Shown: positions 2,340-44,094 of the stretch, one piece after another | Position numbering within the stretch: the stretch's first letter is position 1 | Layout of the letters: the number at the start of each line of letters is the position of its first letter | Source of the DNA: Perkinsus chesapeaki ATCC PRA-425 | Taxonomy: Eukaryota; Protista; Perkinsozoa | Assembly (NCBI GenBank): GCA_013115145.1 | Contig: JAAPAO010000273.1 | Coordinates: 1-44,200, forward strand | Direction: 5' to 3' | DNA length: 44,200 nt | Made by a program: the position numbers and the translations under genes | Notes under the pieces: model-generated | What the model saw: the letters and a program-made list of their open reading frames with translations, nothing else | What the model was told of the DNA's origin: nothing | Database searches by the model: none

Positions 2340-2367
2340 GCACGGCTCTTGGATTACTCTATTCGAT

Positions 2368-4185: not shown

Positions 4186-4430
4186 TTTATTTACTATTTT
4201 GTAGCATTCTCGAGAAACTGTATTCTTTTTCCATGGTTATAGCTTTCCATGTACTTTCCATGACTAAGCCTCGGCGTGTACGCTGTTGAGGTAGTTGCGT
4301 TACTGTAGTGCACTCTGTGGATGGACGAAATCCCTTATTGCAACATTCAAATAAGAGGCTGCTGTGACAGCAGTGCTCTCAGCCACCTTCCGTTACTAGC
4401 ATCAGTCTGACGATACAATTAAAGGCTTAA

Positions 4431-7400
4431 TCATTCATGAAGACACTTGCTCTCGGTGCCGGTAAAAAGACGTTCGTACTTTCTAGGACTATGTCCTACA
4501 TATAAGGTAACCGCAGCCTCCACGCGACCAATTGACATCCCTCGATGTCTTGACAGCGGTACTTCAAGAACTTTCAACACAACATCATATATCAACGGCT
4601 CATGCAAAGCTACACCACCGGGCATACTAAAGAAGCATGCAATGGGATATTAAGGTCATCAAGAGCGGCATGACACAGAGCGACGATGAAAGGCTTCTCT
4701 GAAGAAATTCTCCCCACTCTAGACTCTTTCTGAAAAGCGAAATACGAGTACGGACTCCACACTTGCGGTCCTCACAATGGACTGTTGCAAGAAGCCAGAG
4801 CTGCGATCAGTGACGACATCGGACGTAAGGCTCAACCGGGCGAATTCCACAACACCAGAAATCTTATTCTCCTCGCTCGTGGGACACTCTTCGACACCCG
4901 CTCTAATTCGGACACCTGCGTCAGACGCAGTTCCAACAAGTACTGTCTTGCGTGCACCAATACCTTGCAAGCCATGTGTACTGTTGATGTGCTCTTCCTG
5001 GAACTGCGGGAGAATCACATGTGTGTACGCACTTGACTCATCCGCAGTAGCCTTCTCCAGTAGCTAACCGTGCCCAGCGTGCCCAGAATTATTGCTTTTC
5101 AGCTACCTTGATTGTAATATCAAAAATGCTGCCCTCGGGCAGCCCATCAGAGCAAGGGAGTATTGCGAGAACGATTTCTTCATCAGACGTCGGAACGAAA
5201 AAAATCTAGCATACGTCGGGGATACAACTTTTTAATAGAGAGTGTATCTACAGTAGAGTCTCCAGTGTTCGCGGTGAACTGCAATGGCAGCAGATAGGAA
5301 TGGCTGGACTCTGTCACCAAGAAGGCATCGTCAAACGCAAGGTAAGGCACCTAACAATGGAACTGATCTCATATCGCATGAGATTTCTCACATGTACAGT
5401 CAAGCTAGCGCGCACTGCCAGGATCTCTCGCGCAGCAGTTGATTCGTCCTGGCAAGGCTAATGAAGAGCGGATGTTTGATGCCGGCTCTGACATTGGCAA
5501 CTTGCGCGATTTTGTCTTTCAAGGCATCTCGCCACTTGCCCGCTGTGAAGTCGTACCAACAACTGAGCACTTCTGTATGGAACAAAGTACTAGATCTTAA
5601 AACCTGCCTTTCGCTTGCCCACTGCAGTAACGTATCAATGTTGGGAGGGAGGAAACGACTTGCCATGTGAGATTCCGGCAGCCCAGCCAAGGCCTGGAGT
5701 CCTAGCAGGTGCCATATAGCAAGCAGTGATCGATGCTACATCGGATTCAATTTCTGTCATAAGACGCCGCAGGAGCTCGATACGGCTCGACGTGAGAGTG
5801 TTCCTGATATACGAGAGATTGTCGAGCATCGGCAGGTTCGGTTTCAGCTCACGTGTGAGTGATGAGCTCTTCGGGATTCAAACCAGCCTTGATGAGGCCA
5901 TAAGCTAGAGTGATGGGGTTGCCATCACCCTCGCACATCGCGGACGTGCTAGGGGAAACCTCGCTGGCAGTCGTAAGCGCCTGAGAGGACATGCCGGAGA
6001 AATTATCGCACGCGGAAACTCACAAAGATACACGATTGAAATTGAAGCACTCCGTCTGCCGGTACGGGGTCTCCGTCGGGCAGTCCTGGAGGATCACCAA
6101 GCTCGTCCACATTGCGCCTCGAGTTCATAACCTAAGCAAGACGGACTGAGATCGAACAAAGTGACGGTAGACAGGCACTTGGCCTCGACGGCCATCGGTT
6201 TCCTGTGTCAACTGGTACCATCGAAAATGCGTCTCCTTGAACCTGCAAAGAACGGGCAAAAGAGTTTTCGCCTCATCGAATGTTACTATAATACGATCAG
6301 TTGCGAACTCAGCTTGGAAAGCTGACCGGTCGTACGAGGTCAAAAAAGGCAAATGCCGATCAGCGTTGGGAACCATCAGAGTTTGGACAGCATCATTTCT
6401 ATTTCGATCCGCAATTGCAGGTATATTCAGACCGCGGTTGCTCGGCGTGCTGCCCAGGGGACAGCCAAATGCGAAAAGCAGGTTTCGGAAGACTGCCAGT
6501 TTTTCTTCAGAATGGTTTCATACATGCAGCTTTCTTACGCTGTTTCGATGTCCCTATTTATCGAGTAACGTTGCTCAACTTCATCTCTCTCAGTGTACCT
6601 AAGTATCATCACGTAACGAAGAGGTATCTCGAGACTCTATGGCTACCATATTGTAGCTCGTATGGTGCCAACCTCGGGATAACGTTCGAATATGTGCCTA
6701 CGTAGATTTGTAAGAACCTGAATCCAGCAAGCTTGCAGTTACGTTGATGAGAGGCAGAGGCAGGGAGGCAAGTGCGAATCTCTAGCAGGCAAGTCATTCA
6801 TGTGCCAGTGCACGACTCGTGCACGAGACTGGCGCTGCCAACCAGCTTACCGTGGGTATCATAGACAGTTCTATGACTGATATATGATGTACATGGATCT
6901 GTGGAAGGAGATGAAACTTTAGATTGTATACGATGAGGCCGATCCTGCTGCCGTCCTGCTTGTGTATCCACCACCATGAAGCCTGATAAAACAGAAAGAA
7001 TAATGCCTCTTCTTGAACGAATCTTGCCTGCTCAGCGCCACCTTTGCTAGTAGCAGTGGAGCCATAGATAGCCCTATCGATAAGGTCCCATGTTCCTCGG
7101 GTAGAAGCGACGCTCATCGGATCAGCTTCGGTCGAGATGTAGTTTGCGAACTCGGCGCGCATGACGTCGGAGGTACATCGCGCCGGTTTGAAGAAGATGT
7201 CGAGCCCGGTGGGTGCCTTGTCTTCGTTGAGAGTTTTTCCTTCACCTGAAACATGTTTGATCAGCCGTTACTCGAAGACAGCCATGTTGTTTACCAGTAT
7301 GAGCACCCTCGATATGTTGCTCACCGTGCTCACCACTACCAGACGTGTCAGAGAACTTCGGTACGTGCTCATGGGCTTCAGCAGGCGACTCTCTGACGTG

Positions 7401-10127: not shown

Positions 10128-11156
10128 TTATATCCTCCGGAGTGGAAGGCGCATTGTCGATAGCTTGGTTGCAGGATTCAATAGCCTGATCTCCCAGCCT
10201 CCGTCAGGGGCAGGGCAAATACGGATCATATCCCATTTGAGCGAAATGGTCCAGAAATTGAACTTAACGGTTTCTTCGTCAGCATTGTCGTCATTTGCTT
10301 CAGGTTGAAAGCAACCATCCTCTTTCTCCTCCAATTTGACCTCGGGAAGATCCACTGTTCGGTCACCATGAACACGTACAGTTGACAAAACATCTTCCGA
10401 CTTTGTAGATATACTCACCTCAATTCTGTGAGGGGACGACCAAGCTGTGCTCGTGTTATACACACCGTCGGGAGGAAATACCGTTCGTCGTCGTTTTACT
10501 TCGTCTTTGTTTTTCAAGGACGTTACCAACGGCATGCTGCGTTTGCTCGTACTCACGGTCCCTTCAGCCCTTGATGAGCTTGCCCCACTTCGATCTGATT
10601 CAGGGCCCTTTGAAAGCTTATAGCCGCAATGAGCACCGTATACAAATCTGTCTCCCTCCTTGGGAAAGAGGAGTACTGCAATTTCTGTGTCGACCAAACA
10701 GAAAAAGATCAGTGAACTACGGCTCCGTCCCCGAATACGTTTCGTCTTCCTAAATATGGTCGCCAAATTTCTTTTGAATGCTCTCTCTGTGTCAGAAGGG
10801 GGGTCAAACGCGAAGCAGTCGTTACCGGGAATCTCTCCCAGATTATCAACCTCCAACTCACCAGTCAAGGACTCTCGCTTTAACCAAACCAATGGGACCA
10901 TGCTGAGCATGCCTACTTTTTGGCGGTAGGATCTCATAACAGTAGATTTGATCTTGCCGGACATTTTCCCATCCCTATTTTCAACTTTTAGCTCGAAACC
11001 TTCGATGTCAGGTGCCTTGTCGCATTTTCCGGATCCGCTGTATGTCCCAGTTTCTATTCTATCAGTAACGCGTTCAAGTTGAAGAACAGGCTCTTTCGTG
11101 GCTGCTCCAATAACATACTTTATGAAGATAGATAATACAATACACTCTAGAATCAT
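10128..11156 (-). CDS. Secreted protein, two-domain, with a basic linker
   Basis: Intronless 342-aa ORF with a hydrophobic N-terminus (MILECIVLSIFIKYVIGA). Two domains each begin with a GxY motif (ETGTYSG, PDGVYNT) and are joined by a Ser/Lys/Arg linker (KRS...KRRR). Confidence 0.8.
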   Translation of the reverse strand: MILECIVLSIFIKYVIGAATKEPVLQLERVTDRIETGTYSGSGKCDKAPDIEGFELKVENRDGKMSGKIKSTVMRSYRQKVGMLSMVPLVWLKRESLTGELEVDNLGEIPGNDCFAFDPPSDTERAFKRNLATIFRKTKRIRGRSRSSLIFFCLVDTEIAVLLFPKEGDRFVYGAHCGYKLSKGPESDRSGASSSRAEGTVSTSKRSMPLVTSLKNKDEVKRRRTVFPPDGVYNTSTAWSSPHRIEVSISTKSEDVLSTVRVHGDRTVDLPEVKLEEKEDGCFQPEANDDNADEETVKFNFWTISLKWDMIRICPAPDGGWEIRLLNPATKLSTMRLPLRRI

Positions 11157-11953
11157 TTAGAAGGACGGAAGTACTACTAGAAGGAAAGCCAGTCCTCAAG
11201 CGATGGTTTCAACGTGTTTAACGATTAATAGAGCCACACGAAAATTACCAAAGAAAACTAACTAAGGCACTTTCCTTTCAGTTCTTCCCATCGGTCACAT
11301 GATGATAATTTATTGCCCCATTGACGATCCGAATTTCAACGATAAAACATTTCCCGACATTAAACGAGACGTGAAATATTACGAGTTTCATGGCGAGCGA
11401 GAAAGATACTGCGCGGACGAAGTAGAGAACAAAAGTTACTTCGCTCCGCTGAACAGTACCGCAATCTCTATTCGTTCGAAAGAACTATTCGACGAATAAT
11501 CGAATGACTTATTAATCTATCGAACGATATAATAGCTTAAATATCCGGTTATTCAACTCGTGGCGATGCTACGAAACAATAGAAACAATCAAGCCGCATA
11601 TCTGTCCCCATTGCCGTTGAAGCACTCTCCAAACACTTCCTACCTTCGGCAGTCGGCACGATTATTAGACTGCATCATTATTAACTGCTAAGAAAGTGCT
11701 ATTGTCAGCCTCATCGAGTCATAATAACATAAACGCTAATACCAGACTGCATTCCCTTCTACGCTAGAACATCTGTTTTCTAACATTGCACAAGCTGTAA
11801 CGGTTCGCCAGTTCTAGCTCCAAACAGCTAAGGGACTGTGCTAGTGTATCCTACCTTACTAACAGCTTATTTCGAGTATCGGTGTTAATACTTTTGCCTC
11901 TCAGTTTTTTGTATTAAGTGCGTGTTAGCGCGTTTACTATAGACTTTAATATT

Positions 11954-13432
11954 ATGGTTGATAACGCTTCAGCAATGGCTGCTACTCCTACCACAGTGTC
12001 GGCTGCGTTCGACGAGACTAAAGGTCTATCCAATCTTCCTGGTGCCGCCGTTGACATGGCCGGTTCTACTCCCAAGAACTATCGAGAGCCAAAGAGCTTC
12101 GTTTCCCCTACGGTTGCTTCAACCGCAAACGGTTCATCGCCCAGACATGTCAGCTTCGATAACTATATTAACGAGATTGACCATGAAGAGCTTTCTGACG
12201 TTTTGAATCGTCTTTTGCCCTCTTTGGACTACCTCGAGACTGCTGACATCACCGGAGCTGGCGACGTCTCGAGCAGCGACCGAGGTGTCCTTGGTGAGCA
12301 TAATGTGACCAACCACCCCAGTCTAGATTTATCAGCTTTGAGCGATAGTGTCTTCGAGGATTATCACGAGGACCACTTGAGGCATTTTTCTGCTGATGGT
12401 GATCTCACTTATACAAGTGATTTGAAGACGACCCCTGCTTACGAGACCCAATATGGTGGTGACGCTGGAGGATCTTCTACTGGTGATTCTGACGAGGTCG
12501 GAGAAATGGTCGAGAAGGTTGTGGCTGCCTTTGTCGATGCTCAGAAAGAGCTCGAAGAAGAACGTGAAAAAAGAAGGCAACTGGAGCTTGAGAACGAAGT
12601 GATGCGTATGAGGATTCGTACCTTGAGCAGTGTTGGTTCGGTCACTAGTAGTCGACACGGTAGCATAAGTTACGCTGCTGCCTTGAACAACGGCGTTAAT
12701 GGTGCTGCTGCGTATGGTGATATCTCTCCTAGAGGAAGAGCAATGACTGCGGCTCTTGACTCCTTCGGGCCTATCGACTCTGAAGTTGCACCTCCTCCAC
12801 CGGGCTTGTTGGAGCACCAAATGTCCGCTCCCCCTCGCTCGTATGGTTTAACTACTCGTAGTGGTTATGGGCACAACAGCAGCTGGGATGTTTCCCAGAG
12901 AAGGTCCAGCTCTGGTGCGTTGAGCCATCATCAGCAGCAGCAGATGCAGCCGGTATCGCCGACCACTCCACCTAAGATGAATTTGCTCGAGGCTTTGCAG
13001 GTCAAGACCGAAGCTGATGAGAAGAGGGTCTTCACTGTGCGTAAAGTGCACAAGCTTGGCTTCAAGGCGAGGCATATCCTTAGGGAATACTTCTCCAAGT
13101 TCGGTCATGTACGTGATGTTGTTCTACTGCCAATGCGTGCCAAGCCTCGTCCGGGCCCCGGTGGTATTGTTCGTGGACCTAGACCGAGCTCCATGGGGTT
13201 TGTCGTCATGTCAAGTCCCGAGGAAGTCCGCCGTGTCTTGGATGTAGACGGTGTCCATATTGTCAGAGGTTGGCCTGTGGAAGTCCGCCCTTTCGTGAGA
13301 CCTGCTGATCCACCGACAACTGCTGCCAATGACCAGCAGCATCTGGATGACGGCTTCTCTTATACCTCTAATCGTTCTCCAACTTCTTCAAGTGGCTCTA
13401 TTAGCAGTACTGTCCGTTCGGACACTGAGTAG
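11954..13432 (+). CDS. RRM RNA-binding protein, dinozoan-type, with a long disordered N-terminus and a coiled coil
   Basis: Intronless ORF; first in-frame ATG at 11954. The C-terminal RRM reads RVFTVRKVHKLGFKARHILREYFSKFGHVRDVVLL...RPSSMGFVVMSSPEEVRRVL...VEVRPF. Coiled coil AQKELEEEREKRRQLELENEVMRMRI and a His/Gln run (HHQQQQ). Confidence 0.88.
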   Translation: MVDNASAMAATPTTVSAAFDETKGLSNLPGAAVDMAGSTPKNYREPKSFVSPTVASTANGSSPRHVSFDNYINEIDHEELSDVLNRLLPSLDYLETADITGAGDVSSSDRGVLGEHNVTNHPSLDLSALSDSVFEDYHEDHLRHFSADGDLTYTSDLKTTPAYETQYGGDAGGSSTGDSDEVGEMVEKVVAAFVDAQKELEEEREKRRQLELENEVMRMRIRTLSSVGSVTSSRHGSISYAAALNNGVNGAAAYGDISPRGRAMTAALDSFGPIDSEVAPPPPGLLEHQMSAPPRSYGLTTRSGYGHNSSWDVSQRRSSSGALSHHQQQQMQPVSPTTPPKMNLLEALQVKTEADEKRVFTVRKVHKLGFKARHILREYFSKFGHVRDVVLLPMRAKPRPGPGGIVRGPRPSSMGFVVMSSPEEVRRVLDVDGVHIVRGWPVEVRPFVRPADPPTTAANDQQHLDDGFSYTSNRSPTSSSGSISSTVRSDTE

Positions 13433-18778: not shown

Positions 18779-19801
18779 ATGTTCCCCGCGCATTATCGTA
18801 TTATTCTGGTATGTCTTGAGCTAATCGAACTGGTTGCTCTCGGAGGAGTCGAACATGTCTGCTCGTCAAAAGACGATCTTCGTCCGGGTGAATATGTATC
18901 GCAGTCCATCGATCCCTCGTTATCGAAGTGCACTCCACCATTGACTTCAGCTAGCATTACCTTGTCCTTGGCGGAAACAGGAAACAAAGTTAATGCCAGA
19001 ATCACTATCGACGGTAAACCGTTAGTGACAAAGGCTACGCTCTACTCGTACACCACTGAAATGGTGTATCATGCGATCATCGGAGACGTCTCGAATGTGA
19101 AATGCCACTGGTTCAAGTATGACAAGAAACGAAACTTCATTCAGGCCTACCGGTCGCTTTTTAAAAAGTGTGGTTTAGACTCCCCAGCGGGACCCATTAG
19201 ACTCGTTCTGTGCGGATACAAGGGTTCCGGAGAGACTCTGGACCTTTACCTCGAGGGCCGCACCTACGGGAAAAAGGGGGGTAAGCTCCGCTTCCTGAAG
19301 CATAAGATATCCTTCATGGTAGCTTCCGCAGCGCCCGCGGTTCCTCATACAGCACATAAGAGAAGATCGTCGTTCAGTGTTGGCACTGATATGTCGGATG
19401 ATAAACCCCTCAAGGCTGCCGCAAAGGGCCCTGATCAGGAATACTCACCGACTATAAAAAAGAAAAAGACCAATGCAGATGAGAAAAGTCCCATAGAAAA
19501 TGGGGTTTATATCGGTGTCGTGCCAGCGGGTGATGTAGGAATAAGTGCAGTTATACAGTTAGAAGACGGAGAGCAGTTAATAACTGTTACTTCAAGTGTG
19601 AATGGGGCACCAGGTCCTAGGATTGACAATGCGGTACTGGTCAAAGCTGAGGATTATCCCACCAGTGGATGCTTCAAGTTAGAGGGGGCCTCTACTCCAT
19701 CGATGATGCGCATGAAGCCAAGCGCAACTCAACCACCTTCACTGGACGTTGATGCTGGAGACGGAGGCAAATATACGCTTCATCTACTCACACTACTATA
19801 G
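18779..19801 (+). CDS. Secreted protein, two-domain, with a basic linker
   Basis: 340-aa ORF with a signal-peptide-like start (MFPAHYRIILVCLELIELVALG). GxY domain starts (RPGEYVS, ENGVYIG) and a linker with KRR and KKKK. The 3' end may be spliced to further exons around 19880-19990. Confidence 0.75.
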   Translation: MFPAHYRIILVCLELIELVALGGVEHVCSSKDDLRPGEYVSQSIDPSLSKCTPPLTSASITLSLAETGNKVNARITIDGKPLVTKATLYSYTTEMVYHAIIGDVSNVKCHWFKYDKKRNFIQAYRSLFKKCGLDSPAGPIRLVLCGYKGSGETLDLYLEGRTYGKKGGKLRFLKHKISFMVASAAPAVPHTAHKRRSSFSVGTDMSDDKPLKAAAKGPDQEYSPTIKKKKTNADEKSPIENGVYIGVVPAGDVGISAVIQLEDGEQLITVTSSVNGAPGPRIDNAVLVKAEDYPTSGCFKLEGASTPSMMRMKPSATQPPSLDVDAGDGGKYTLHLLTLL

Positions 19802-20699: not shown

Positions 20700-23455
20700 G
20701 ACCTCGTATGAGGTATAGGTTGGGTTAGGCCAAGACAACAACTTGGCGCCGATCGTGTTTTCGTGATTACAGACTCATCCCCTGACTGTGTTTGACAAGC
20801 CCTACAACTCGTGAGCTACAAGAAGCATGTGAGAGTTCTGTAAACTGTCCACTGTAGTCTAGACAGGTCACGGCACTATACTCTAGACTCTGGGAGCAGA
20901 GATACATTCTTTTTACGAAACGTGCCAATTCGCAGCAACGCTGAACGAGCCACCCTATACGGTGGTATGAGACTCGTACCAGCACGAGACTCATCCAATA
21001 TGTCTCATACTATGAGACTATCGAGCTGCTAATAGCAGCTTCAGTCCGGGGCTGGTGATGCCCCTCTAAAGGGCTCCGCAGTGCAGGACCTGCCCAAGCT
21101 TTATTTGCGGGAACGCAGGGACAGGCATCATCCTCCGCATCAACCAGATTGCCGATGATAGCTTGCACTTACACAGCCCAGTTGGTACCGGGCTCATTGT
21201 CGGTAGTATTCCGGAAAGCCAGGGTCATCGTATGGTCATACGAAAGGTATGGAGTGTTCGATCTGACAGTGGCTCAGTGCGCCATGACACTGCTTTCGAT
21301 CATCGAAGTTCGATGTTGTTACAGCTGCAGAGCTAATGATGAGCTGCTAAACCGTGGCAAGTTACACAATCTCGTTTTAGTCTGCTTTGTTGATAGCCTG
21401 CATATCACGAGGATGATGTTATTTAGTTTCAGTTGCTCAGCAGCCGATGGTCGACAGCCGCAGTGACAGAAAAATGTTGTGTCTACTTTTCAGAAGGGGT
21501 AGTTTTTTTTGTGGTAAGGATTATACTGATTACATGTGCCACTACCTGAGAACCAGTAATCATGTACACCCTCTCGAACAGTATACGCGGCCAAACGTCG
21601 AAGTTGTCATGGATTCCGAGAGTGAACCTAATGCTTCTCGACATCTACTCTTGTTGACACTTGAAGGCTCTGCGTCACTGGAGCACTCCGCCGTGACACC
21701 GAAAAGTGAAGGCCCGCCCTCAGCTTAGCAAATCCAGAGGATCACCGTAGAAAATGAATTGAATTCTGTATGTTTTTAGTGGAAGCCCTAGGGACGCCGC
21801 TGATGACTTGTGATCCAGAACTGCGACCTTCGCACCTTCCGGAGCATCTCTCCTCTTTCCCTGTGACTGCATTATTAGTTCAGTCTCTCATAAAATTGTC
21901 ATGATCGCTCCTGTTCTCATCATTTGTAAGTTATTGGTAGGGGTTTCAGCCCAGGCGGAGGGGAGTCCTACCGACAGTGCTCTTGGTAACTTCACCGCTC
22001 TATTCCTCGAACGGGAAGTCCGCAACTTCGTGGATAGCACGATCGAGGAGGTAAAGTCTTTTGCAAGTGGCAGGGTACGGTCATTGCGCGAAGACACTGA
22101 TGTGAGAATGCTGCAAAACGACAGTGACTACCCTTCCTGTGGGAGATGTGAATCGTTCTACACCACAGAGTTTATCAACGCTTTTATGCGACAGATGAAC
22201 GAAGCATGCAGGCGCCCTCGTCCTACGGATCAGCTTCTACTGAATGAATTCTGCACGTACATGGAGTTGAAGATAACTAGTGCCCTTCAGTTCTTACATG
22301 GTTATCTTCTCGACCGGTCCCGCTCTCTTGCACTCACTGCTGCTCTTTGCGTCCACATTGGCTGGTGCCCGGCGAAGGCTCTCTTGAATAAGTTCGGCAA
22401 ACTGACCAACCCAGATCGGCTCGTCGATCTCTCCAACTTTGTCTATTGCCAGCACAGGCCTGATGCGACCTTTTCCGAATGCTCGGAAGCTGTTCTAACG
22501 AGCATGACAGATGTTGCTGTTAGGAAAGTCAGCGCTGTATGTTCTACAGAGAACCCTGATGGTGCTTTTGAAGAGTTCTGTTATTTTTATCTAGTGCATG
22601 AGAATTTTGGTCGTGGGATGCTTGTGAGCTTCTTAAGCATCTTCAGTCATGCAGCAGCTCACTGCACTGACAGAAAATGCAGTCAGGTTGAAGTGTGATA
22701 AGAACTTCTTATTAAGAAGCGTATCACAACTTTTGATTCACAAGTGATAAGACTAATACGTGTGGTGATCAGATTGCTTCTGGTAACAGTGCGATTGTAA
22801 AATTCCCAATATGATCCAGCTCACACTGCCAGGCTGCTGATTTTGTACTGAAAATTTTTGTCGGAAGAGTCTAGTCTAAAATATCTTCAAACTGGAGATG
22901 ACTTATTCGATTAGACCTACTTGAGCACAACTCGTTTTTCTGGTTTAATTTGAATAGAGTTGAGTTCGGCTGCTCAGATCAATGTATGGATCCCACCTTC
23001 CGATTCTTTATCAAGGAGTCAATCGGACCGATTCACCTCGTACTGATGTCCGATTGAACTCGTATATTATATACGCGGTATATACGGTATATACACCCTA
23101 AAGTACATCATTGAATGTAGATGTGCCGCGGCTGTCTCGAGAGCGACGTTGTCGAACCTTCCGAGATACATTCTATTCTTCCGAGATTTTCAGATTTTCG
23201 CTCTGCCGAGACAGTCTAAGTGTAGACTCTATGTTAAACCGAACACCATCAAATGGTCCATATAAACAACGTGGCAGGATTTGGAGATAATAGGGTGACC
23301 TCAGTCACCTAAGAGCTAGTGTGCTTCGGCTAATTCACAGTTATGCTTTGCGTCGAGAACAATGCACGTCTGAATTCGGGAGAACATCATATCGATCATG
23401 ACATTATTGACATATTCTAACCTGTATTCTTCCAGCACCGCTAGCTGTAGTGCTA
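20700..23455. repeat. Tandem segmental duplication, copy A
   Basis: Collinear with 24295-27125. Identity is high over about 21400-23455 vs 25100-27125, and there are degenerate matches upstream (e.g. GGTGGTATGAGACTCG at 20961 and 24471). Confidence 0.92.
21901..22698 (+). CDS. Secreted protein with two tandem saposin-like (SAPLIP) domains, paralog A
   Basis: Intronless, 265 aa, signal peptide. Domain 1 has the Cys spacing C-x2-C-x19-C-x14-C-x31-C-x5-C and ends LCVHIGWC (saposin B-like). Domain 2 has six Cys (YC-x10-C-x19-C-x12-C-x27-C-x4-C). Confidence 0.75.
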   Translation: MIAPVLIICKLLVGVSAQAEGSPTDSALGNFTALFLEREVRNFVDSTIEEVKSFASGRVRSLREDTDVRMLQNDSDYPSCGRCESFYTTEFINAFMRQMNEACRRPRPTDQLLLNEFCTYMELKITSALQFLHGYLLDRSRSLALTAALCVHIGWCPAKALLNKFGKLTNPDRLVDLSNFVYCQHRPDATFSECSEAVLTSMTDVAVRKVSAVCSTENPDGAFEEFCYFYLVHENFGRGMLVSFLSIFSHAAAHCTDRKCSQVEV

Positions 23456-24104
23456 CTGACTACGTAGCCCCTCACCATCTTGAATTGTTACAAATGCGAT
23501 GCTGATCCCGCCAACGATAGTTTCGGGTACTCAAACGAACAGAGGTTGTGGAGACGAGAGGAGTAACCTGTGGTTCACTGGTGAGTGAGTAGTGCTGACT
23601 GTAAACCTAAATGCGGGCTTTGCTTGCAAATCGATCCATTCAGACTCTACGGTAGCAGCTGACAAACTATAGCCTAACTAAGCCTCTTTGAATGGCTTGT
23701 TCTTTATTTACTGAGGTATTTGTCAAATGATGATTGCTACTCGATTCTGGCATTCGCGAAATAATTCCCCATTGAAGAATGAAAGACTCGGCAAGATGTG
23801 CTATAGGTATTTTGTCAACAGGAGAGGTCACTTTTCGCATCGAGACAGGCACGCACAATTCCATGAACATAGTGAGAAAGCTCTACGAAAGAAATGAAAC
23901 ATCTGACACCGACCCAATAGTATCGGATACTAAGTATCCGTGAAGCGAAAGTCCCATAAACACACTTCGCACACCTTGCGTTGGATGATCGGCTGGCCCA
24001 GTTAGGATTATTCCCCATACTACTGTTAGCGCAAGACATAATGAATAGCTACTATTTGCAGGTAGATACACTTGAGATCTTGCAACTCAAACTCCAACCA
24101 AAAC

Positions 24105-24250
24105 CCGTCCACGAACGCGAACAACCTGGGAAATTCTGGCGAAACAGTTTGCCGCGTTCGCTTGATATGACCCTCGATTTCTCTAAACAAGTTGTTCGCA
24201 ACAAGTTGTTGTGATATACTTCTGAAGCCGCGGCCTAACGCGCTCATGAA
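24105..24250 (+). pseudogene. Degenerate coding-like relic, repeated at 27421-27545
   Basis: VHEREQPGKFWRNSLPRSLDMTLDF...LL*YTSEAAA aligns to IYEGKKAGEFL*NSLLH*IEMILGF..LL*NTFEAAV at 27421-27545 (offset about 3.3 kb). Both copies carry stops. Confidence 0.4.
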
Positions 24251-24294
24251 GGGCCGCAGTGCGGCATCTGGAAACGAAATTGCAATACAAGGCT

Positions 24295-27125
24295 TGTATG
24301 AGGCATGGGTTGGGTTAGACCCGAAGCCCAACCTGCTTCTTCTAATAGAGCACTGCTTCTACGACGGCATCCGACGAGCTCCACAAGGAGTATGTGAGAG
24401 TTATGCAAGTTGCCTAGAAGTAGAGGCCCAGTTAACGGTTTCGCGTCAATGCGGCAGCGGTATAGTAGGCGGTGGTATGAGACTCGGACCACCATGAGAC
24501 TCATACTATAACTCCCATACTATCAGACTATCGGGTTGATATCACGCGAACCTTCCAAATGTTCAACCCTACGACGACATCCAAGAAGCGATTCGAATCG
24601 CCGGAGAGAAGGCTTTATCTTTCGGTTACTCATCATTGGTCTGTGCTCATATTGCAACGAGAAGTCGGAGAAGGCACTATGATGTTCAGTCCGGAGCTGA
24701 TGATGGCCCCGCTTGAGGGCTCTGGACCAAGCTCATCTGTGGGAACCCTGCGATCGGTGGTCTGTTGACGCGGTCACCGTAACAGACATTACAAGGCAAT
24801 GATTACTGTGCACGCCAACCCTGGTGCCAGTGATAAACTCCCTTGTTACAGACCTGGTCCACTTTGTACCGATCTCATCGTTGGTAGTATTCCTGACAGC
24901 CAGCGATGTAATCATTATTTGTAACTATCTTGGACATAACGATGCTGGTCATCGGATGCTGATAGAAATGCATAGAATGTTTAATCTGACTGTGGCGTAG
25001 TTATCAGTCGCCTTCTAGAAGGGGTTATTAATATCCTTCGATGTTGTTACTATGCAGCTACAGAGCCATTTTGCGTGGCTCAAGTCAAGCGTGCGTAAGC
25101 TGGTTTCAGCCTTCGTAGCTGGTAGCCTCCATATCACGAAAGTGATGTCATTCAGTTTCTTCGTTCGGTAGCGGTTGTCCCGGCCAACTTGGCCGACAGC
25201 TGCAGGGACAGGAAAAATGCTTTGTCTACTTTTTAGGAGGGTCTTTTGTGATACTGTCTATCCGAGTTACATCTGGCACTAGTGAAACCATAGGAAAACG
25301 CAGCGATACATTAACTAAGGACGCAAAATTATGCATGCCTCCTCGGACAGGCTAAACGTAGAGGTTGTCATGGAACCCGAAACTGAACCTAATGCTTCTT
25401 GACATCTACTCTTCCTGACACTAACTGGCTCTGCGTCACTGGAGCATTCCGCCGTGACACCGAGAAGTGAAGCCCTCCCCTCAGATTAGCAAATTCAGTA
25501 GAATTCACCGTAGACCACGGTCCGTGGTAGTTGGATTGAATTCGGTATGCTTCTAGACGAGGTGCTAGGCACGCCGCTGATGACTTATCATCCAGAACTG
25601 TGCCATTCGCACCTTCCAGAGCACCCCTCGTCTTCCCTTGTGACTGCATTATTAGTTCAGTCTCTTACATAATGATTACGATAGCTCCCTTTCTCATCAT
25701 CTGTAAGCTATTGGTTAGAGCCTCGGCCCAGGCGGAGGGAAGTCCTACCGACAGTGCTCTTGGTAACTTCACCGCTCTATTCCTCGAGCATGAAGTCCGC
25801 AACTTCGTGGATGACATGATCCAGAAGGCACGATCTATTCCAATTGGCAGGGTACGCTCGTTGGTCGAAGGCACTGATGTGAGAATGCTGCAAAACGATA
25901 GTGACTACCCTTCCTGTGGGAAATGTGTAAAGGGTCGCGCCCTGATGATCATCAACATTGCCATGCCACAGATCAATAATGAATACAGGCGCCCTCGTCC
26001 TACGGATCAGGTTGTGGTGAATGAATTCTGCAAGTACGTGGAAATGGACATCACCCCTGCCCTCGAATTCTTATTTGGTTATCTTCTCGACCGGTCCCGC
26101 TCGTATGAACTTGCTACTGCTATGTGCGTCGACAATGGCAGCTGCCCGGCGAAGGCTCTCTTGAATAAGTTCGACAAACAGACCAGCCCAGATCGGCTCG
26201 TCGATCTCTCCAACTTTGTCTATTGCCAGCATAGGCCTGATGCGACCTTTTCCGAATGTTCGAAAGCTGTTCTAACGACCATGACAGATGTTGCTGTTAG
26301 GAAAGTTGACGCTGTATGTTCTGCGAAGAACCCAGATAGTGCTTTTGAAGAGTTCTGTTCTTATTATAAGATGAAAGAGAATTTTGGTGGTGGGATGCTT
26401 GTGAGCTTCTTAAGCATCTTCAGTCATGCAGCAGCTCACTGCACTGACAGGAAATGCAGTTAGGCTTAAGTGTGATGAGAAACATATCACGAGTGTCAAG
26501 TCCCATCTGCGCTTGGTGAGCAGATTGCTTCTGAGAACAGTGTGACTGTGAAAAATCAAATATGATCCAGCTCACACTGCCAGGCTGCGTCCTGCTGATT
26601 TTGTATTGAAAGTATTCGAAGGAAGAATCTTGTCTGTAAAACCTCTGAGCTAAAGATGGCTTACTCGATTAGACCTACTCGAGCTCAACTCTTTTCCGGG
26701 TTTAATTTAAACAGAGTTGAGTTCGGCTGCTCAGATCAATTTATTGCTCCCAGCTTCCGATTCCCCATCAGGGAGTCACAGACGTGTTATTCAATAACTG
26801 ATTGAACTCTGTACATGTTAGCGCGACTGCCTCGAGAGTGGACGTTATCGGACCTAGCGTCTCGGATTCTCGCTCTGTCGAAACAGCGAGTGGAGATTCT
26901 ATGTTAAACCGAACACCATCAAATGGTCCATATAAACAACGTGGCAGGATTTGGAGATACAAAGGCGGTCTGAGTCACCTAGCAGCTAGTGTGCTTCGGC
27001 TAATTCACAGTTATGCTTTGCTTCGAGAACAATGCACGTCTGAATTCGGGAGAACATCATATCGATCATGACATTATTGACATATTCCAACATGTATGCT
27101 TCCAGCACTGCTAGCTGCAGTGCTA
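24295..27125. repeat. Tandem segmental duplication, copy B
   Basis: Same orientation as copy A at an offset of about 3.5-3.8 kb. Shared upstream, coding and downstream blocks; the shared tract ends at ...CTAGCTG(T/C)AGTGCTA at about 23455 and 27125. Confidence 0.92.
25672..26463 (+). CDS. Secreted protein with two tandem saposin-like domains, paralog B
   Basis: ATG at 25672 (the ORF-track GTG at 25600 is upstream of it). Clear paralog of A. The third Cys of domain 1 is Tyr, and CAG->TAG removes the last 4 residues. Confidence 0.75.
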   Translation: MITIAPFLIICKLLVRASAQAEGSPTDSALGNFTALFLEHEVRNFVDDMIQKARSIPIGRVRSLVEGTDVRMLQNDSDYPSCGKCVKGRALMIINIAMPQINNEYRRPRPTDQVVVNEFCKYVEMDITPALEFLFGYLLDRSRSYELATAMCVDNGSCPAKALLNKFDKQTSPDRLVDLSNFVYCQHRPDATFSECSKAVLTTMTDVAVRKVDAVCSAKNPDSAFEEFCSYYKMKENFGGGMLVSFLSIFSHAAAHCTDRKCS

Positions 27126-27394
27126 TCGACTTGTAACAGGTTGGACCATCCAACTTGTGGATCTACGTTCATGCCACTACGTCAGGGTCTCGTCTTGTGG
27201 GCCGAGAGTATTCGAATGAAAGAGAGATTATGTTCCTGAGTGGTAAGGACTTCGCAGGCCTATCTTTGTATATCCGAATGTGATTGGTGATTGCTCCAGT
27301 TATTAATAACAAAACAAACTCGAAGGGATAGTTGAACTTTATTGCATAGATAGCTACACTTCACCACCAAGTGACTTGTGTTTTGCAATGCATC

Positions 27395-29183
27395 TCAGTG
27401 AGATGATCTCACCATAATGCATCTACGAAGGCAAAAAGGCTGGTGAATTCTTGTGAAACAGTTTGCTGCATTAGATTGAGATGATCCTTGGTTTCTTGTT
27501 GTAAAATACTTTCGAAGCCGCGGTCTACCGCACTCACACGAAAATCGTACTGACCAGGAGGTTACTTTTACCAGCAATGGGGTAGAAAGGCTCACATTAG
27601 ATTGACTACTTCCATACAGGAGGCTTTCGTTTTCATGGTAAACCAGCTCGGTTATTTCCAGAGAACCCCGGCAAGAGGAGCCTTCTCGGGCAGGAGATAT
27701 CGCGAGCAGAAGGCAGTTGATGAGTTCTCCTGGGTAATCTAGTTTCCGAGGAAAAATCGCAGACAACGATGCAAGTACTAGATACTCGTGCCCCTGACTC
27801 GACAACTTGGCCAATCAGCGGTATTATGCGCCTCACCTCGATGACTCCTGGAATTGCCGTCCGAACATAAGCTCTGTCCATAACTCTTTCCAGTCTGCCG
27901 AGGAATCTCGGGGACGCTCTTGCTAGAAGGACCTCGCATTCCACCAAAGCCCGGTTCGCCAGACGTGAAGGCGTGGCGGGGACGGTCTCGCCCAATGATA
28001 ACTGACGGTCATCAGGAGACCCTTTTTGAGGAGTGAGCCAGTAGCGAGGTTCGTCATCACCGCTGGGACGTTCTACGACAAAGCAGGTAAGGTCCTCCAC
28101 AGGATACCTTGCAGAAAGTAACCTTCCTGAAAGCAGACTGAAAGTTTAGTCTCTCCGGGACTCACTCATTTCGGTTTCACGTTGTCGAGAGGTTAAGCCG
28201 TAGACCGGCGGCAGAGGGGCTCTTGTGTCACACACTTCAAATTCCGGCGGAGGATTCGTGCGTCCTGATCAGCAGCATGAGCGTGGTTCCATCCTATGTC
28301 TCTTACTTCGTTTAGGTGAACTCAGCTCTCCTTCATGTTGCTTCTGCTCAGCTTGGTCCGTCTGTACCCCGCAACTGATCTGCACTGTCATCTCTCCCCG
28401 GCAACGCGAACACAAAGGAGGACTAATCGGAGCGGAGCCTGGCAACAGCTAAGATGAGAAATGAGCCGAAATGCTACCATCTGCGGTTTGCTGGTTGTTA
28501 TCGATTTCCGGACTCGATACGATCACGGCAGTAACCACGCTTTCACTTTCACTTTCGCTAAGAGAAATCGGTTCCTCATTAGGTGAGCAGGAACCTCGAA
28601 AAAGAGGGAGGTTTGGGGTGGAAGTCAGTGGCTCGCCAACCTTGAGGTGATTGCGGCTCTCTGCGCATTCGATGGCCGATGGCCGATGACACTATTTTAC
28701 AAGCTGTGTATTCGAACAAGTCTATAAGGCACTTAAGAACCCAACAACCAGCATTGGATTTGAAGGCATGGAGGGCGTATCATGATTCTTCACACATGAC
28801 TCTTTTCAATTGAACCCATCTGAATCGATGAGTCTTTAGTGCTATCAACTTGTACTGGCCGCGGTAGACATCCAATAAGCTCGAGATCATTCAGTAATCG
28901 ATCAACGTCTTCAATTCGTATAGTCGAGCCTGACAACCTGACAAGAGAGAGTCGCCCCGAGCTGGTCTATCTACGTCGCTCGCGAAGCAGGAGGTCTCGA
29001 ACCATAACGTGCGATGAAAGCGTGTTAGATATCCTCTCTAGATTGACGGTAACTTCCCCTCCGTCACCTGACAAGGAAAATAATGAAAACGAGAAAGCGG
29101 CACAGAAACGGACGTGGTCTTGAGGGAAGGTGGAATATGTTCATAACATCTTCACGAGTGTACTTCCCGAATTTTGGAGCCAT
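27395..29183 (-). CDS. Hypothetical multi-exon protein
   Basis: ATG at 29183 (MAPKFGKYTREDVMNIFHL). Phase-compatible GT-AG exons give VTVNLERISNTL...IEDVDRLLNDLELIG, an acidic/Ser linker, CSRC, and RRLLSARYPVEDLTCF...TAIPGVIE|LSSQGHEYLVLASLSAIFPRK. The 3' end is uncertain. Confidence 0.7.
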
Positions 29184-29319: not shown

Positions 29320-34249
<4,930 letters not shown>

Positions 34250-38623: not shown

Positions 38624-39607
38624 AGGAGAAGGGATTTATTTATAGGTACCTGGAAGGGAAAGAAATAAGTATATTATTATTGATACGATTGATAAGCAAT
38701 AACGGTCGAGCTACTCAACTTCAGTAACCATTGTGAACTTCTCTGTAGCGTTTACTATTAACAAAAAGAACGTACACTCTCTATTGTAGCGTTTTAACAT
38801 TAGAAATATTCCTTTTTAAAGGTGTCGCAGGATCCATTAAACCTGGTAGACCGGTCCACTAAGGATTGGTATAGGATAATAATAAGATTTTCAAAACATT
38901 AAAAATATACCTTCACGCGCCGTTGAGATATTAACAACACTATACAAGTAATTCATGGAGAAACTTGTGGCAGTCTTAGAAAGGATGACTCGCACTGGTA
39001 GTGGTGGGATGCAGCGCAGGGGAGAGAAGAGTCCAGCTTTGATAGTCCATTAAATCACTAATCTTCAAGAGAATCATTCAGTCGAATTCAGTATTGCTCT
39101 TTATACGTACCAGAAGCGCATTACTATAATGAAATGCGTCCTTGAGAGATACTGTTAATGGTTATACTCACCGCTATCAGAACAGGGTTACCGAAGAGGA
39201 GACAATTATGGACAGCACCGTTCAATTAATCGTTCCAGATCTAAAGGAAGGATTCTGAATTAGATCATGCAAATGCCAAGCTTGAGCTAGGATTCTCAGA
39301 TTCCCCACTAAGTTCTACAAGTCGGTGAGCACGGAATTAAGTGGACGTCTCAAGCATGGTAGCGGGCAGGTTTCGGCATTTCAGAAGATAACAAGTGACC
39401 GCCGATGGGAATCGATCTTGCGCCCTCGCGGAGTACAAACGCGCAGACTAACCATTACACAAAAAATTCCGCTTGACGGTCGCGCATCCTATGAGTGTCC
39501 GTCTTCGTTGAGTGTTGCAAACCGATCCCAAAACTCAGCAATTAAACGTTAAATCCGCCAAGCTACTTCTTTGTATCAGCCTTTATTACCAATCTTGTGT
39601 GAAGTGT

Positions 39608-41074
39608 ATGTCTCCTCCACCGACCCTTCCTCTGTTCGCCACTGACACTGAACTGACCTTTTCAGACGAGCCCAGACTGCCTATCCCGGGACCCGTTACG
39701 GCCGACTTGGTGTTCTCAGATGACATACCGGTCGTCAAAGTTGTTAAAAAGGAACGGCCACCTCGAGCACCGGTGGCCCAGCCCAGAAGGAGAAGGGCCT
39801 CTCAGAAGGCCAAGGCTGCGGCGGCCGCTCGCCAAAGAGATCCTCACTACCAACCTTTGAAGTTCAACAAGGATTTCAAACTCGTAGATGAGCCCGAGGT
39901 CGCCGCGACGCAGTTAAAAACTGCCGCCGGTCCGCAGCCGAAAAGCTCCTCTAGCTCTGGCCATCACCGACAAGCCTCTTCCTCTGTCGAACAGGACAGT
40001 AGTGGGAAATCAACACCGATGGTTAGTGATGATGAAAGCTATGCTCCGTCAAGGACGGGAAATAGAAAGAGGGTAAGGGGGACTCTCTGTTGGCAACCGA
40101 TGTGAGCATGCCGTGGGCCTTAGCAATACTTATAGGGAATTTTGGTGTCGAATGTTCTATTTTGTTGGAATCAATCAAGAAGAATTTTAATACAAGTTGT
40201 CTTCGTTCGCCGATTCGTTCGATGGATATTCACTCAATCGGTGCGAGTTTTGGATTCCCCATTAGAATCGGAAGGTCCAACTTGGCTGCCGAACATGCCG
40301 AAATATCAACGCCCATATGAGGCAACAAAAGTTCGGGAAAATTTTCCGATCGGTCCATTCTTTGCATTTCTCAACTTTGGTGAATTTATTCGACGAAATT
40401 GTATAGGTCAGTGAAGGAAGACCAAAAGGCCCTATTTCAGTACCGGGCATTATTCTTCCCACCAACCCGCTTTATGCATTATTTACCAATAGCAATACTC
40501 AGTATTACACACGGCGCTATTGTCAGTCACGTAAAGGAAGAGTTCGCTCAAGGAAGCTTCGATCTGTCGAGGACAGCGTCTCCAGTGGCTTCGGAAGCGA
40601 TGACCAGACAGAACCAAAGCACGGTCTCCTTTCAAGCACGCTCATGCCCTCTTATAAACCAGTCACGCCAAAGCCCGCTGCCGGAAAGCCCCTCCCGCCG
40701 CGACGTCGGCGCGAACCAAGCATGTACACTCCTTTAAAGGAGTTCCTGTATAACGGCCTAGACGCCAGCAAACGGAAAGGTCACGTTTGCGAGGAGGAGA
40801 GGACTGAGCACGAAAAAATGGAGGTACCTCCGCCACAGATGGTTCCAGGAGGTCAAAACCGTTTCAGATATCTTCACTACGCAGTAAGCTGGCGAGTCGG
40901 ATACATGCCTTGGAGACCTACATGGCAACGGCCTCGCTGGCGGCTGTAGGTCAGAGGATGGAAACCTATGACACCGTCGAGGCTGAGGTTGGAGGGACAG
41001 AGAAGGCGGCGGGTGTAGATATTGTACCGGTTGTTAAGAACAAGCGAAAACGCAGACGTAGAGGGTGCCGCTGA
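39608..41074 (+). CDS. Basic, Pro/Ser-rich low-complexity protein (probably nuclear), multi-exon
   Basis: ATG at 39608; exon ends NRKR|GTAAGG at about 40072; acceptor TATAG| at about 40408; open frame through 40885. Several Arg/Lys clusters (PRRRRASQK, PRRRREP, KNKRKRRRRG). The last exon frame is uncertain. Confidence 0.6.
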
Positions 41075-41642
41075 AGGCTATCATGTGAACATGATGATCA
41101 ATGCTGCTACTGAAGTCACTGAGTGTTGCGTGAAGTAATAGGGCATCTTCAGTCGTTGGTGTAGGGGCGGAATGGTGGTCAAGATGGCCAGTAAGTTAAC
41201 ACTGTGGTGGAAGTGAGCATATGGTCACATGGTGATGTCTTTAAACGATGCATGACCTGGATACATATTCTGATTGAGAACTTATTTGACCAGTAATGTA
41301 CCTAATATATTAAAGGTGTGATTTATTAAATTGACCTTTATATTCCAAACCTTTCCCAGTCACTGAGTTCTGCCCGTTATAGTGAGGCGCACAAGAGAGC
41401 TAAAAAGGAATATATCACCACAGTTACATTATTCTTGTACAGCTTCTACTAGGCTGCGTTCCGGATGGTGGCGAAAACCGCTTAAGGCTTAATGTTGCCC
41501 GTGAAATGCAACTAGCTCCCACATTGTCAGATGGCAAGAGCCCCCTTTATTGGGTCGATTCCTGTGTGTCCATGGATGTGTTACTTTATTAGATCGAGAC
41601 AGCTATTCCCTATAGGACTATATTCTCTAGTTCGATTGGTTC

Positions 41643-44094
41643 ATGTCACTATCAAGGGCAGTAAAGGAGATCAAGCAGGTGGCAATACTAACCGCAACCA
41701 ACCCACCGGTGGCATCTCAAAGAGAGATCGCTGCCAAGTGGTCTGCTGCTCTTGAAGCGTTCGTCCAAAGAATAGGTGCTTCATCCGGAGCAGGCACGAT
41801 CGAGGTCTCTCCTATGAACCTATCTCGAGCGCTGCAAGATGTAGCTAAGCATGCACCTGAACAAGGAAGGTCTCTGGTGTATGCCATCTTACCGAACATC
41901 ATGGACGGCGACCGTGGTGGCAACGGCCCTCTGCCGACTTTGGGAGCATTCGGGCCCGTGGAGCTTGCGTACTTGGCGAACAGCATTGCCAATATTATAG
42001 GGTCCGACTCGAATGCGAGGCAATCTCGGGAGCTGCTTCGACGGTTCGGGCAAGAAGTGGGGGAGTACTTCTCCAAGCCAGGGAGGCTGGAGGCTGTACC
42101 CATCTACACGCTGGTGACTCTCACGAATGCCCTCAATAGGCTGGGGTACGACGGAGCATCGCGAAGACGAAGAGAGGAGGACCTATATTCTCGATTCGAT
42201 CGCCTGTGCTGCAGCAAGATCGAATCGATGAACGCTAGCGATATTGCGGTGGCCCTTCAATCCTTCCACAATGGCGGCTGTCGGCAAGTCAGGCCCTCTT
42301 TGGAGCTTCTCAGTAAAGCCTCGGAGCGTCTAAAGGGCGATCTCAGGCAGCAGGTGGGATGCTTTGGTGCTGCGGAGCTTGGTAGCGGTGACCTTAGATA
42401 CCTTCTAAAAGCCTGGCACAGCTGCTTAACATATTTGTGACGTTTGGATATACGCAGGATAGAGATCTACTTGTATTCCTTTTTGAGTCCATTCTGGCAA
42501 CACCTGCTGAGGAGCTGGAGGTACCTCTGATGTGGGTCGAGCTACGTCACGTCACGCTCAGGTCTTCTGTGCTCCTCTGGCGCTGAACTCCCTCTCCAAA
42601 TGCTACAAGGCCTTGAATGACGACAGCGACATACCACTGCCGACAACTCTGGTTTTCAATCTAGCCACGAAGTAGCACGACTGGGCTGTCACCTGGCATG
42701 TCTTTGATAGGCACATTCTGCCCAGACTCGATGAGCTTGCCTCCTGCCAAGTCGCGAATGTGGTGAACGCCCTTGGCAGCCTGCAGGTCATGGACTATCG
42801 CTTGCTGAAGAGTATGTCTCATCTGATCGCCAACAGTGACGGCGGTCGTCGAATTCCCCTGGAGACATTCTCCTTCCAGGAGCTCAGCAATATATCCCAC
42901 GGCTTCGCGAAAATATCGTAAGTATCTTTGTCGACCAGTAGAAGATACGAACGCCATCTTTGTCAGTTACGGTAGCAGTGACCTCTACAGCACGCTTTTC
43001 GGCGAGGCCAGTCGGCGAAGAAGCGAGTTTGACTCTCAAGGCGTATCCATGTTCCTCGATTCGGTGCGACGTGTTGCTAATCGATGGTTTAATAGCATGA
43101 TGAGAGATCCCAATCGCCCAGGGCCTCAGCCGGGTACGTGGTCGGGTACGTGGTCGGGTACCTGGGAGTGCGATGAGAAACAACACGCGCTTGCTGTGCA
43201 GCTGGAACATTCTCAAACGCTTTGCGTAGTATTGCTCTCCCTGATAGCCGACTCTGTATTCTATACTACCGTCCTTCTAAGTGTACCGATGATATTGTCC
43301 GCTGCTGTTCAGGCCTACAGTACATTCCTCACTCCTTGATGGATTCAATAAGGCAGTTGTTAGCCTCTTGTGAATCTTGGTCTAAAGAGCGCCTGCAGAT
43401 GCCTCACAGTGGCGGAATAAGCGTGCAGTCTGCTACCCAGATTTTGCTATGTCTTGTGGAACTCGGTCGAGGCAGCGCGGCGTCCGAGTCTCCCTTGGCG
43501 AAATGCTTCAGCCGGACAGCCTCCACCAAAGGTGAGAAAGAGTCGCTTCATCACCCAGTCACCACGGCGTGTTTTAGGTGATAATTTCGGAGATGACATC
43601 GATTCCATGCTACCGCATTTACTCATTGCTTCTCTGAAGGAGCGGGCCGATAAGCTCACAAAGGAGCAGACTCGACACGTCGCCCATGCGTCCCGAAGAT
43701 ACAAATCGTGCGATTCGGCCACGTACAACGCACTTCCAGAAGAGGTGGGTTTACCCTCGCCGTGGTTACATTCAGTTTTGGTTCTCAGATGATCCGGTGG
43801 CTTGATGACATTCACAGGGAGTTCCCGGCTTCAGTGAAAACTCAGCGCAGTGTTCCTGTGGCGAAGGCGCGGTAAAGGCCGGTTGAACTCCAAAACATGT
43901 TTCTGAAAATTACGTTTCATTATTACGTTGAAGGTGTCGCGTTGCTGCAGTGCAACGGAAAGAGAAAGATGATTGATCACGAACAAATGATCGAATACCG
44001 TAACGTTGTACAAGAAGCGATAGAAGTGCATTGTGTCGTTTTTGCGACAGCGACAACCCTGTGTAACAGATGTCCCTGTGTCATAAATGTGTAA
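41643..44094 (+). CDS. Heptatricopeptide-repeat (HPR/OPR-like) helical RNA-binding protein, probably organellar
   Basis: Repeat starts FGPVELAYLANSIA, MNASDIAVALQSF, LASCQVANVVNALGSL, FSFQELSNISHGFAKI and FDSQGVSMFLDSV. After removing the intron at 42918-42966, the two F residues at 42868 and 43028 are exactly 37 aa apart. Some exon joins are unresolved. Confidence 0.78.
43131..43165 (+). repeat. 12-bp tandem repeat (CGGGTACGTGGT) x ~2.9
   Basis: CGGGTACGTGGT CGGGTACGTGGT CGGGTACCTGG is directly visible and translates as GTWS repeats in ORF 42836-43339. Confidence 0.9.

Follow-up and report, generated by a model that had tools for sequence, protein, structure and literature searches.

Tandem duplicate genes of Perkinsus chesapeaki from a widespread, unnamed protein family with predicted secretion and two putative, divergent saposin-like domains

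Results

Two tandem genes within a segmental duplication

A stretch of 44,200 nt from Perkinsus chesapeaki ATCC PRA-425 (GenBank assembly GCA_013115145.1, contig JAAPAO010000273.1, positions 1 to 44,200), referred to here as the window, was analyzed for two neighboring genes that encode predicted secretory proteins, each with two cysteine-rich helical units. Paralog 1 was a single complete open reading frame (ORF) of 265 aa on the forward strand (21901..22698, stop codon included), and paralog 2 was an ORF of 263 aa on the same strand (25672..26463, stop codon included). The program-made ORF list begins paralog 2 at an upstream GTG (25600); the ATG at 25672, which aligns with that of paralog 1, was used instead. 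The two proteins were 75% identical over a gap-free alignment of 260 aa, and their coding DNA was 83-84% identical, which confirmed the tandem pair that the first-pass annotation of this DNA had placed at 21901-26463.

Both paralogs were located inside a head-to-tail segmental duplication of approximately 3.3-3.8 kb. Nine direct-repeat families (D1-D9) spanned both copies with a start-to-start spacing of 3314-3777 nt, and they delimited, with approximate boundaries, copy A containing paralog 1 (20960..24182, forward strand) and copy B containing paralog 2 (24470..27496, forward strand). The non-coding flanks of the two copies showed 74-92% identity.

Paralog 2 corresponds to GenBank FOL47_004834, which bears the UniRef name 'Secreted protein'. 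The GenBank model comprises 210 aa, shorter than the 263-aa ORF, and treats an in-frame segment of 159 nt with GT..AG ends (25852..26010, forward strand) as an intron; the codons for Tyr105 and for the first two Cys in unit 1 of paralog 2 lie within this segment. The GenBank model of a paralog elsewhere in the genome (on C791; P0004, 243 aa) likewise deviates from the plain ORF, at the C-terminus. Both models may represent gene-prediction artefacts or alternative splicing. The earlier description of the pair as intronless fits the single ORFs, but not the GenBank model of paralog 2 with its excised segment.

Architecture of the encoded proteins

The N-terminus was hydrophobic and ended with AQA in both paralogs, and the hydrophobic start was kept across eight paralogs of the genome. 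In paralog 1, the predicted signal peptide, read from the sequence, covers residues ~1-19 (21901..21957, forward strand), and it is followed by an acidic helical region of residues 20-76 (21958..22128, forward strand), which contains an NFT sequon and an RSLRE motif. The calculated pI of this region was 4.5-4.7 in both paralogs, the NFT sequon was conserved, and AlphaFold2 placed helices at residues 23-36 and 38-63 of paralog 1. The signal peptide and the helical pro-region of the first-pass annotation are thus in agreement with the hydrophobic N-termini ending with AQA, the UniRef name of paralog 2, and the modeled helices.

The RSLRE motif (22078-22092; residues 60-64 of paralog 1) and its counterpart RSLVE (25855-25869; residues 62-66 of paralog 2) have the PEXEL-like form R-x-L-x-E and are located at the end of the N-terminal helical region, directly before unit 1. 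RSLVE is shared with the genes L005 and L006 on C3392, RSLLG is found in L004, and the motif is absent in the paralogs on C791, C2812, and C323. The motif is a possible processing site.

The two units of paralog 1 contain six Cys each. Unit 1 (residues 77-160; 22129..22380, forward strand) has the pattern C80-x2-C83-x19-C103-x14-C118-x31-C150-x5-C156, and unit 2 (residues 180-262; 22438..22686, forward strand) has the pattern C183-x10-C194-x19-C214-x12-C227-x27-C255-x4-C260. In paralog 2, unit 2 (residues 182-263; 26215..26460, forward strand) also contains six Cys, whereas unit 1 (residues 79-162; 25906..26157, forward strand) contains only five, Tyr105 (codon 25984..25986, forward strand) standing at the position of the third conserved Cys. 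It was the sole unit without the third Cys among the 229 distinct units of the family compared below. Units 1 and 2 of all eight paralogs aligned with the six Cys columns in register, and therefore the protein represents an internal tandem duplication of one module. Unit 2 carries an insertion of eight residues between C1 and C2, which gives C-x10-C instead of the C-x2-C of unit 1.

The full-length AlphaFold2 model, built from an alignment of eight sequences, was all-helical with a pLDDT of 70.7, and unit 2 of paralog 1 formed helices at residues 191-214, 221-232, 234-244, and 247-256. When unit 1 was modeled alone (16 sequences), the pLDDT was 87.5 and helices were found at positions 5-31, 39-49, 53-66, and 69-79 of the unit. 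In this model, one helix of 27 residues carries C1, C2, and C3, and the second helix carries C4; C5 lies where the fourth helix ends, and C6 follows just beyond it. The two units are accordingly all-helical and homologous, as the first-pass annotation had described, but its count of six Cys per unit does not hold for unit 1 of paralog 2; the LC-x5-C ending ascribed to unit 1 is found in paralog 1 as L-C-x5-C (C150 and C156). The mature proteins would comprise approximately 245 residues, with calculated pI values of 5.42 and 5.86 for the two paralogs. Unit 1 had a pI of 8.3 in paralog 1 and 7.8 in paralog 2, and unit 2 had a pI of 5.4 and 7.0, respectively.

A large family without a Pfam entry

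The P. chesapeaki genome, searched in six frames, revealed eight full-length paralogs, namely the two in the window, three arranged in tandem on C3392, single genes on C791 and C2812, and a further, divergent gene on C323. A search of the genome with a unit profile detected 21 units in at least 11 genes, adding two genes on C48 and one match on C1412. The trio on C3392 (L004-L006) spans 47632-54687, the two-unit genes on C48 lie at 935-6778, and the single-unit match on C1412 lies at 12686-12883. A profile of the eight paralogs retrieved 131 representative relatives at E<=1e-3, 56 of them at E<=1e-10 and nine at E<=1e-30, and many of the 131 matched in two to four separate stretches. The word-index protein search returned only the window's own two proteins. 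With at least 11 paralogous genes in the genome and 131 representative relatives, both genes of the window are real.

The relatives originated from P. marinus and P. olseni, from the gregarine-like Digyalum oweni and Selenidium pygospionis, from Tetraselmis astigmatica, T. chui, and Ancoracysta twista, and from many metagenome and transcriptome assemblies. The count of family members proposed in the first-pass annotation thus yields the 11 or more genes of P. chesapeaki together with relatives in the two other Perkinsus species. A signal-peptide-like N-terminus was found in 96 of the 121 family proteins that start with Met. Long His-rich or His-Gly-rich C-terminal tails were present in 23 of 132 family proteins (P0020, P0026-P0028, P0033, P0048, P0054, and P0060 among them) and absent from the window proteins; such tails suggest that a subfamily binds metal or senses pH.

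In the public databases, the relatives are named 'hypothetical' or 'uncharacterized', except for two UniRef names. One is the 'Secreted protein' of paralog 2, and the other is that of P. marinus C5KTA5, 'Saposin B-type domain-containing protein', the orthologue of the gene on C2812; the latter name suggests that another profile, probably PROSITE, matches one relative. The domain is not covered by any Pfam family. The conserved motifs G-Y/M-L, R/V-P, and A-x-G-x-C-x-G-x-G-x-C are particular to this family and are not matched by the SapB hidden Markov models (HMMs). In about half of the units outside the Perkinsus clade, C3 is followed five residues later by a seventh Cys, which is part of a 'C-x-x-T-x-C-P' motif (family HMM column 30); this seventh Cys showed at most weak co-variation with C6 (p 0.03). 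In the literature searched, no paper linked Perkinsus with saposins or saposin-like proteins with alveolates, and a search on the Perkinsus secretome and cysteine-rich proteins gave nothing relevant.

An ML lipid-recognition domain was found in two of the relatives, and in P0025 it precedes four units. P0025 is an intronless 821-aa gene on an ENA metagenome scaffold (L009:437-2902 and L010:407-2872); its contig also carries a GCN5L1 gene and is therefore eukaryotic. The ML fusions suggest a shared lipid-handling context.

Co-loss of Cys residues

An iterated HMM search collected 289 unit instances, of which the 229 distinct ones with enough flanking sequence were used for the analysis of Cys co-variation. 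C2, C3, C4, and C5 were each present in at least 99% of the units, C1 in 89%, and C6 in 77%. Of these units, 22 lacked both C1 and C6, 4 lacked C1 only, and 31 lacked C6 only (Fisher p 1.4e-12). Two units lacked both C2 and C5, neither of which was ever lost singly, and C3 and C4 were nearly invariant. The pairing predicted from this co-loss is nested, C1-C6, C2-C5, and C3-C4.

Comparison of the unit with saposin-like domains

Unit 1 of paralog 1 has the six-Cys layout of a saposin-like domain, starting with C-x2-C, ending with C-x5-C, and spanning 77 residues from C1 to C6, and the family consensus has the same six Cys columns. Two kinds of unit depart from this pattern: unit 2, with C-x10-C at the start and C-x4-C at the end, and the five-Cys unit 1 of paralog 2. 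In a Foldseek search of the unit-1 model against 350,542 PDB chains, ranks 1-10 were all saposin-like and aligned over 80-92 columns; they consisted of saposin B, the N- and C-terminal domains of surfactant protein B, and open saposin C, and the lower matches included saposin D, saposin A, and the saposin domain of acyloxyacyl hydrolase. The nearest neighbors by ESM features, for both the whole protein and unit 1, were the SapB and ARMET_N clusters (0.80-0.84, where scores below 0.9 serve as leads only).

Several results weigh against a saposin relationship. The Foldseek matches had E-values of 0.4 or worse, TM-scores of 0.41 or less, and rmsd values of 6-9 Å, and every structural score was below significance. 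In addition, the amino-acid term of Foldseek rewards aligned Cys, so the Cys pattern itself contributes to the ranking. The two proteins, 10 selected relatives, and all 131 relatives were scanned with Pfam (E<=0.01 and E<=10), and none of them matched SapB_1, SapB_2, or Saposin even at E<=10; the scans of the relatives yielded only scattered chance matches, plus ML in two proteins and ARMET_N in two. The window proteins were thus not recognized by the curated SapB_1 (PF05184) and SapB_2 (PF03489) models, and so the domain is not filed as a member of that family. Sequence searches of the PDB with the single protein, the unit profile, and the family profile found no saposin and no other meaningful match. 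Finally, all 22 double losses of C1 and C6 occurred in C-terminal units, which form 11 clusters at 50% identity and 4 at 35%, and they therefore represent few independent events.

The Cys pattern, the co-loss, the Foldseek ranking, the ESM neighbors, and the UniRef name of C5KTA5 support the saposin-like character claimed in the first-pass annotation, whereas the sub-significant structural scores and the missing SapB HMM and PDB profile matches do not. Likewise, the comparison of unit 1 with saposin structures that it had proposed gave ten saposin-like best matches but no significant score, and the saposin-type Cys pairing that it presupposed is compatible with the co-loss, but that co-loss comes from few events. 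As several weak lines agree, the best available reading, not a proven one, is that the domain is a very divergent saposin-like (SAPLIP-like) module; it would work like the saposin-like proteins and is probably a distant relative of them.

Species-specific expansion and divergence of the pair

In the maximum-likelihood tree, the window pair fell inside a clade of six genes found only in P. chesapeaki (support 100/99), whose nearest relatives were single representatives of P. marinus and P. olseni. The six-gene clade is a species-specific expansion, largely tandem, and the two genes of the window are recent tandem duplicates within it.

Between paralogs 1 and 2, dN/dS was 0.64 for the whole gene (dS 0.24), 0.35 for the signal peptide and N-terminal region (dS 0.34), 0.93 for unit 1 (dS 0.29), 1.31 for the N-terminal half of unit 1 (dS 0.28), and 0.68 for the linker and unit 2 (dS 0.12). 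The synonymous divergence was uneven, with dS values of 0.29-0.34 in the 5' two thirds against 0.12 in the linker and unit 2; the low 3' value could stem from gene conversion that affected the 3' part once the duplication had occurred. The excess replacements fall in unit 1, where paralog 2 has lost a Cys and carries a Pro in helix 1, and they are therefore ascribed to relaxed constraint or a changed function of that copy, not to proven positive selection. With one partner of the C3-C4 pair gone from its unit 1 and with nearly neutral evolution of that unit, paralog 2 is probably decaying or changing its function. The six-gene expansion and the high dN/dS of unit 1 keep a host-facing role possible.

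Other ORFs of the window

Ten other ORFs of the window (155-605 aa) gave no match in a Pfam scan at E<=1e-3. They lie within 1749-4185, 10128-13432, 18779-19801, 29320-30456, and 39512-43339, and one of them (41643-42440) has the same length as paralog 1, 265 aa.

Discussion

On balance, we consider it somewhat probable that the pair represents tandem duplicates in a widespread, unnamed secretory family of two divergent saposin-like domains that act on lipids by analogy with saposins. In each mature protein, two homologous four-helix domains of approximately 85 residues would come after the acidic N-terminal helical region, and each domain would be locked by the three nested disulfides C1-C6, C2-C5, and C3-C4. 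Saposin helices 1 and 2 would run as one continuous helix of 27 residues, like the 'open' lipid-binding conformations of saposin and surfactant protein B. Such a fusion, deduced from the 19-residue C2-C3 spacing and the long first helix, would explain why open saposins are among the best structural matches. By analogy, the proteins may bind or extract lipids or sit on membranes, and they might assist lipid handling as cofactors inside an acidic compartment of a digestive or lysosome-like kind, or scavenge lipids after secretion; a cationic pore-former would be less likely.

A bolder extension, put forward only tentatively, is that the family forms an undescribed 'fused-helix' branch of saposin-like proteins in alveolates, chlorophytes, and Ancoracysta, with canonical disulfides and an open-like conformation. 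In this extension, the branch would replace canonical saposins in Perkinsus and would have been expanded in tandem in P. chesapeaki as host-facing lipid or membrane proteins. A six-frame search of the genome with SapB_1 and SapB_2 gave no match, but the SapB_2 control matched nowhere and the HMMs have only 34-38 positions, so this is weak evidence of absence.

The unit may also be an independent disulfide-rich four-helix domain that resembles saposins only by convergence, as a short secreted helical domain stapled by nested disulfides, and serves functions unrelated to lipids, in a wall or matrix, in adhesion or protein binding, or in metal binding. We regard this as unlikely, although it deserves serious attention. 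It would account for the lack of any sequence-level link to saposins through Pfam or PDB profiles, for structural scores that all stay below significance, for a helix layout unlike that of a canonical saposin, with C1, C2, and C3 on a single first helix, and for family motifs that the SapB HMMs leave unmatched; the His-rich tails of some relatives would suit metal binding. Convergence would have to explain, on the other hand, that the ten best matches among all PDB chains searched were saposin-like with end-to-end alignments, that the predicted disulfide nesting is exactly that of saposins, and that the Cys spacing at both ends and the C1-C6 span fit them as well. The ESM neighbors and the independent UniRef name likewise point to saposins, and the ML fusions suggest a lipid context.

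The first-pass annotation had proposed the pair as candidate amoebapore/NK-lysin-type effectors; in the specific form weighed here, they would be amoebapore/NK-lysin/granulysin-type membranolytic proteins, secreted to lyse the membranes of host haemocytes or to kill bacteria. This is speculative and somewhat disfavored, and we assign it a small probability. A putative saposin-like domain with a predicted signal peptide, a tandem expansion restricted to one species, a dN/dS close to 1 or higher for the first helix of unit 1, as often seen in host-interaction genes, and the mildly basic pI of unit 1 in both paralogs are all consistent with such effectors. Known pore-forming saposin-like proteins, however, are single domains of ~77-80 residues after processing, whereas the mature window proteins would combine two domains with an acidic N-terminal region and have pI values of 5.4-5.9. 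A pore-former would be marked by a single mature domain with a net positive charge (NK-lysin, granulysin) or pH-dependent oligomerisation; the predicted two-domain architecture and acidic pI do not match this, and the amoebapore/NK-lysin assignment is not supported as it was stated. The high dN/dS coincides with the lost structural Cys and the Pro of paralog 2, which points to relaxed constraint. Moreover, relatives occur in free-living green algae (Tetraselmis), in a free-living predator (Ancoracysta), and in environmental eukaryotes; the family is thus not specific to parasites, which argues against parasitism as its core role and against the earlier view of an effector family of a parasite. 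A redox-active or metal-binding C-x2-C, as in thiol oxidoreductases or zinc proteins, was also considered, since unit 1 carries this motif at a helix N-terminus, as do thioredoxin-fold and Erv-type redox proteins. This role was rejected and has a negligible chance of being correct, as the losses of C1 follow those of C6 rather than those of C2: C1 is missing in 26 units that keep C2, and C2 tracks C5. Unit 2 of the Perkinsus proteins has C-x10-C at that place, and no oxidoreductase family was matched in the Pfam scans. Identity with nsLTP/prolamin proteins was rejected by the lack of a CC or CxC motif, and identity with elicitins by their disulfide map, which is not nested.

If the divergent saposin-like domain is a true relative of saposins, the superfamily would come to include a group of sequences overlooked by the standard domain databases, with at least 131 representative clusters spread over Perkinsus, gregarines, green algae, and numerous uncultured eukaryotes. 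The family would then offer candidate secreted lipid-handling proteins for Perkinsus, a major genus of shellfish pathogens in which canonical saposins were undetected. The six-gene expansion marks the family as fast-evolving and worth examining in transcriptomes of host and parasite. Should the resemblance be convergent only, the secreted domain family would still be large and conserved and, having no name, would deserve its own entry in the databases; neither outcome alters a major concept. Automatic annotation has picked out this large, putatively saposin-like family, which has no entry in Pfam, a single time, in P. marinus.

Among known systems, the ML-domain proteins (NPC2, GM2 activator, and MD-2; PF02221) are linked to the family only through the fusions in relatives; the ML domain is a beta-sandwich, and the window proteins contain none. 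The N-terminal domain of MANF/CDNF is a saposin-like, helical lipid-binding domain with a C-x2-C start and nested disulfides. Its Pfam model ARMET_N (PF20145) gave weak matches in 2 of the 131 relatives, the best with E 0.001 and below the curated cut-off, and the ARMET_N cluster was among the ESM neighbors (0.82). The window proteins differ from MANF/CDNF in that their units are tandemly duplicated; they have neither an ARMET_N match nor the C-terminal SAP-like domain, and are thus not members of that family. With amoebapores, NK-lysin, and granulysin, they share the six-Cys helical module, the predicted secretory route, and the occurrence in a protist. They differ in having two domains, approximately 245 mature residues, an acidic pI, and relatives in non-parasitic algae. 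NK-lysin and granulysin are strongly cationic, and the acidic charge calculated for the window proteins would resemble that of lysosomal saposins more closely.

Compared with saposins A-D and surfactant protein B, the spacing between the Cys residues is different. Canonical saposins have approximately 27 residues between C2 and C3 and approximately 24 between C4 and C5, whereas the present units have 19 and 27-31, respectively. The first two saposin helices are predicted here as one straight helix, with three helices in the second half; the window proteins do not contain a SapA domain, and the family has conserved motifs of its own. Similarly to saposins and surfactant protein B, however, the proteins are predicted to be secretory and consist of repeated all-helical six-Cys domains of ~80 residues, arranged in tandem as in prosaposin. 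The C-x2-C start and the C-x5-C end are shared, the nested pairing deduced from co-loss would be the same, and in the Foldseek and VIA-align searches these proteins were the best matches, with alignments that ran along the full domain.

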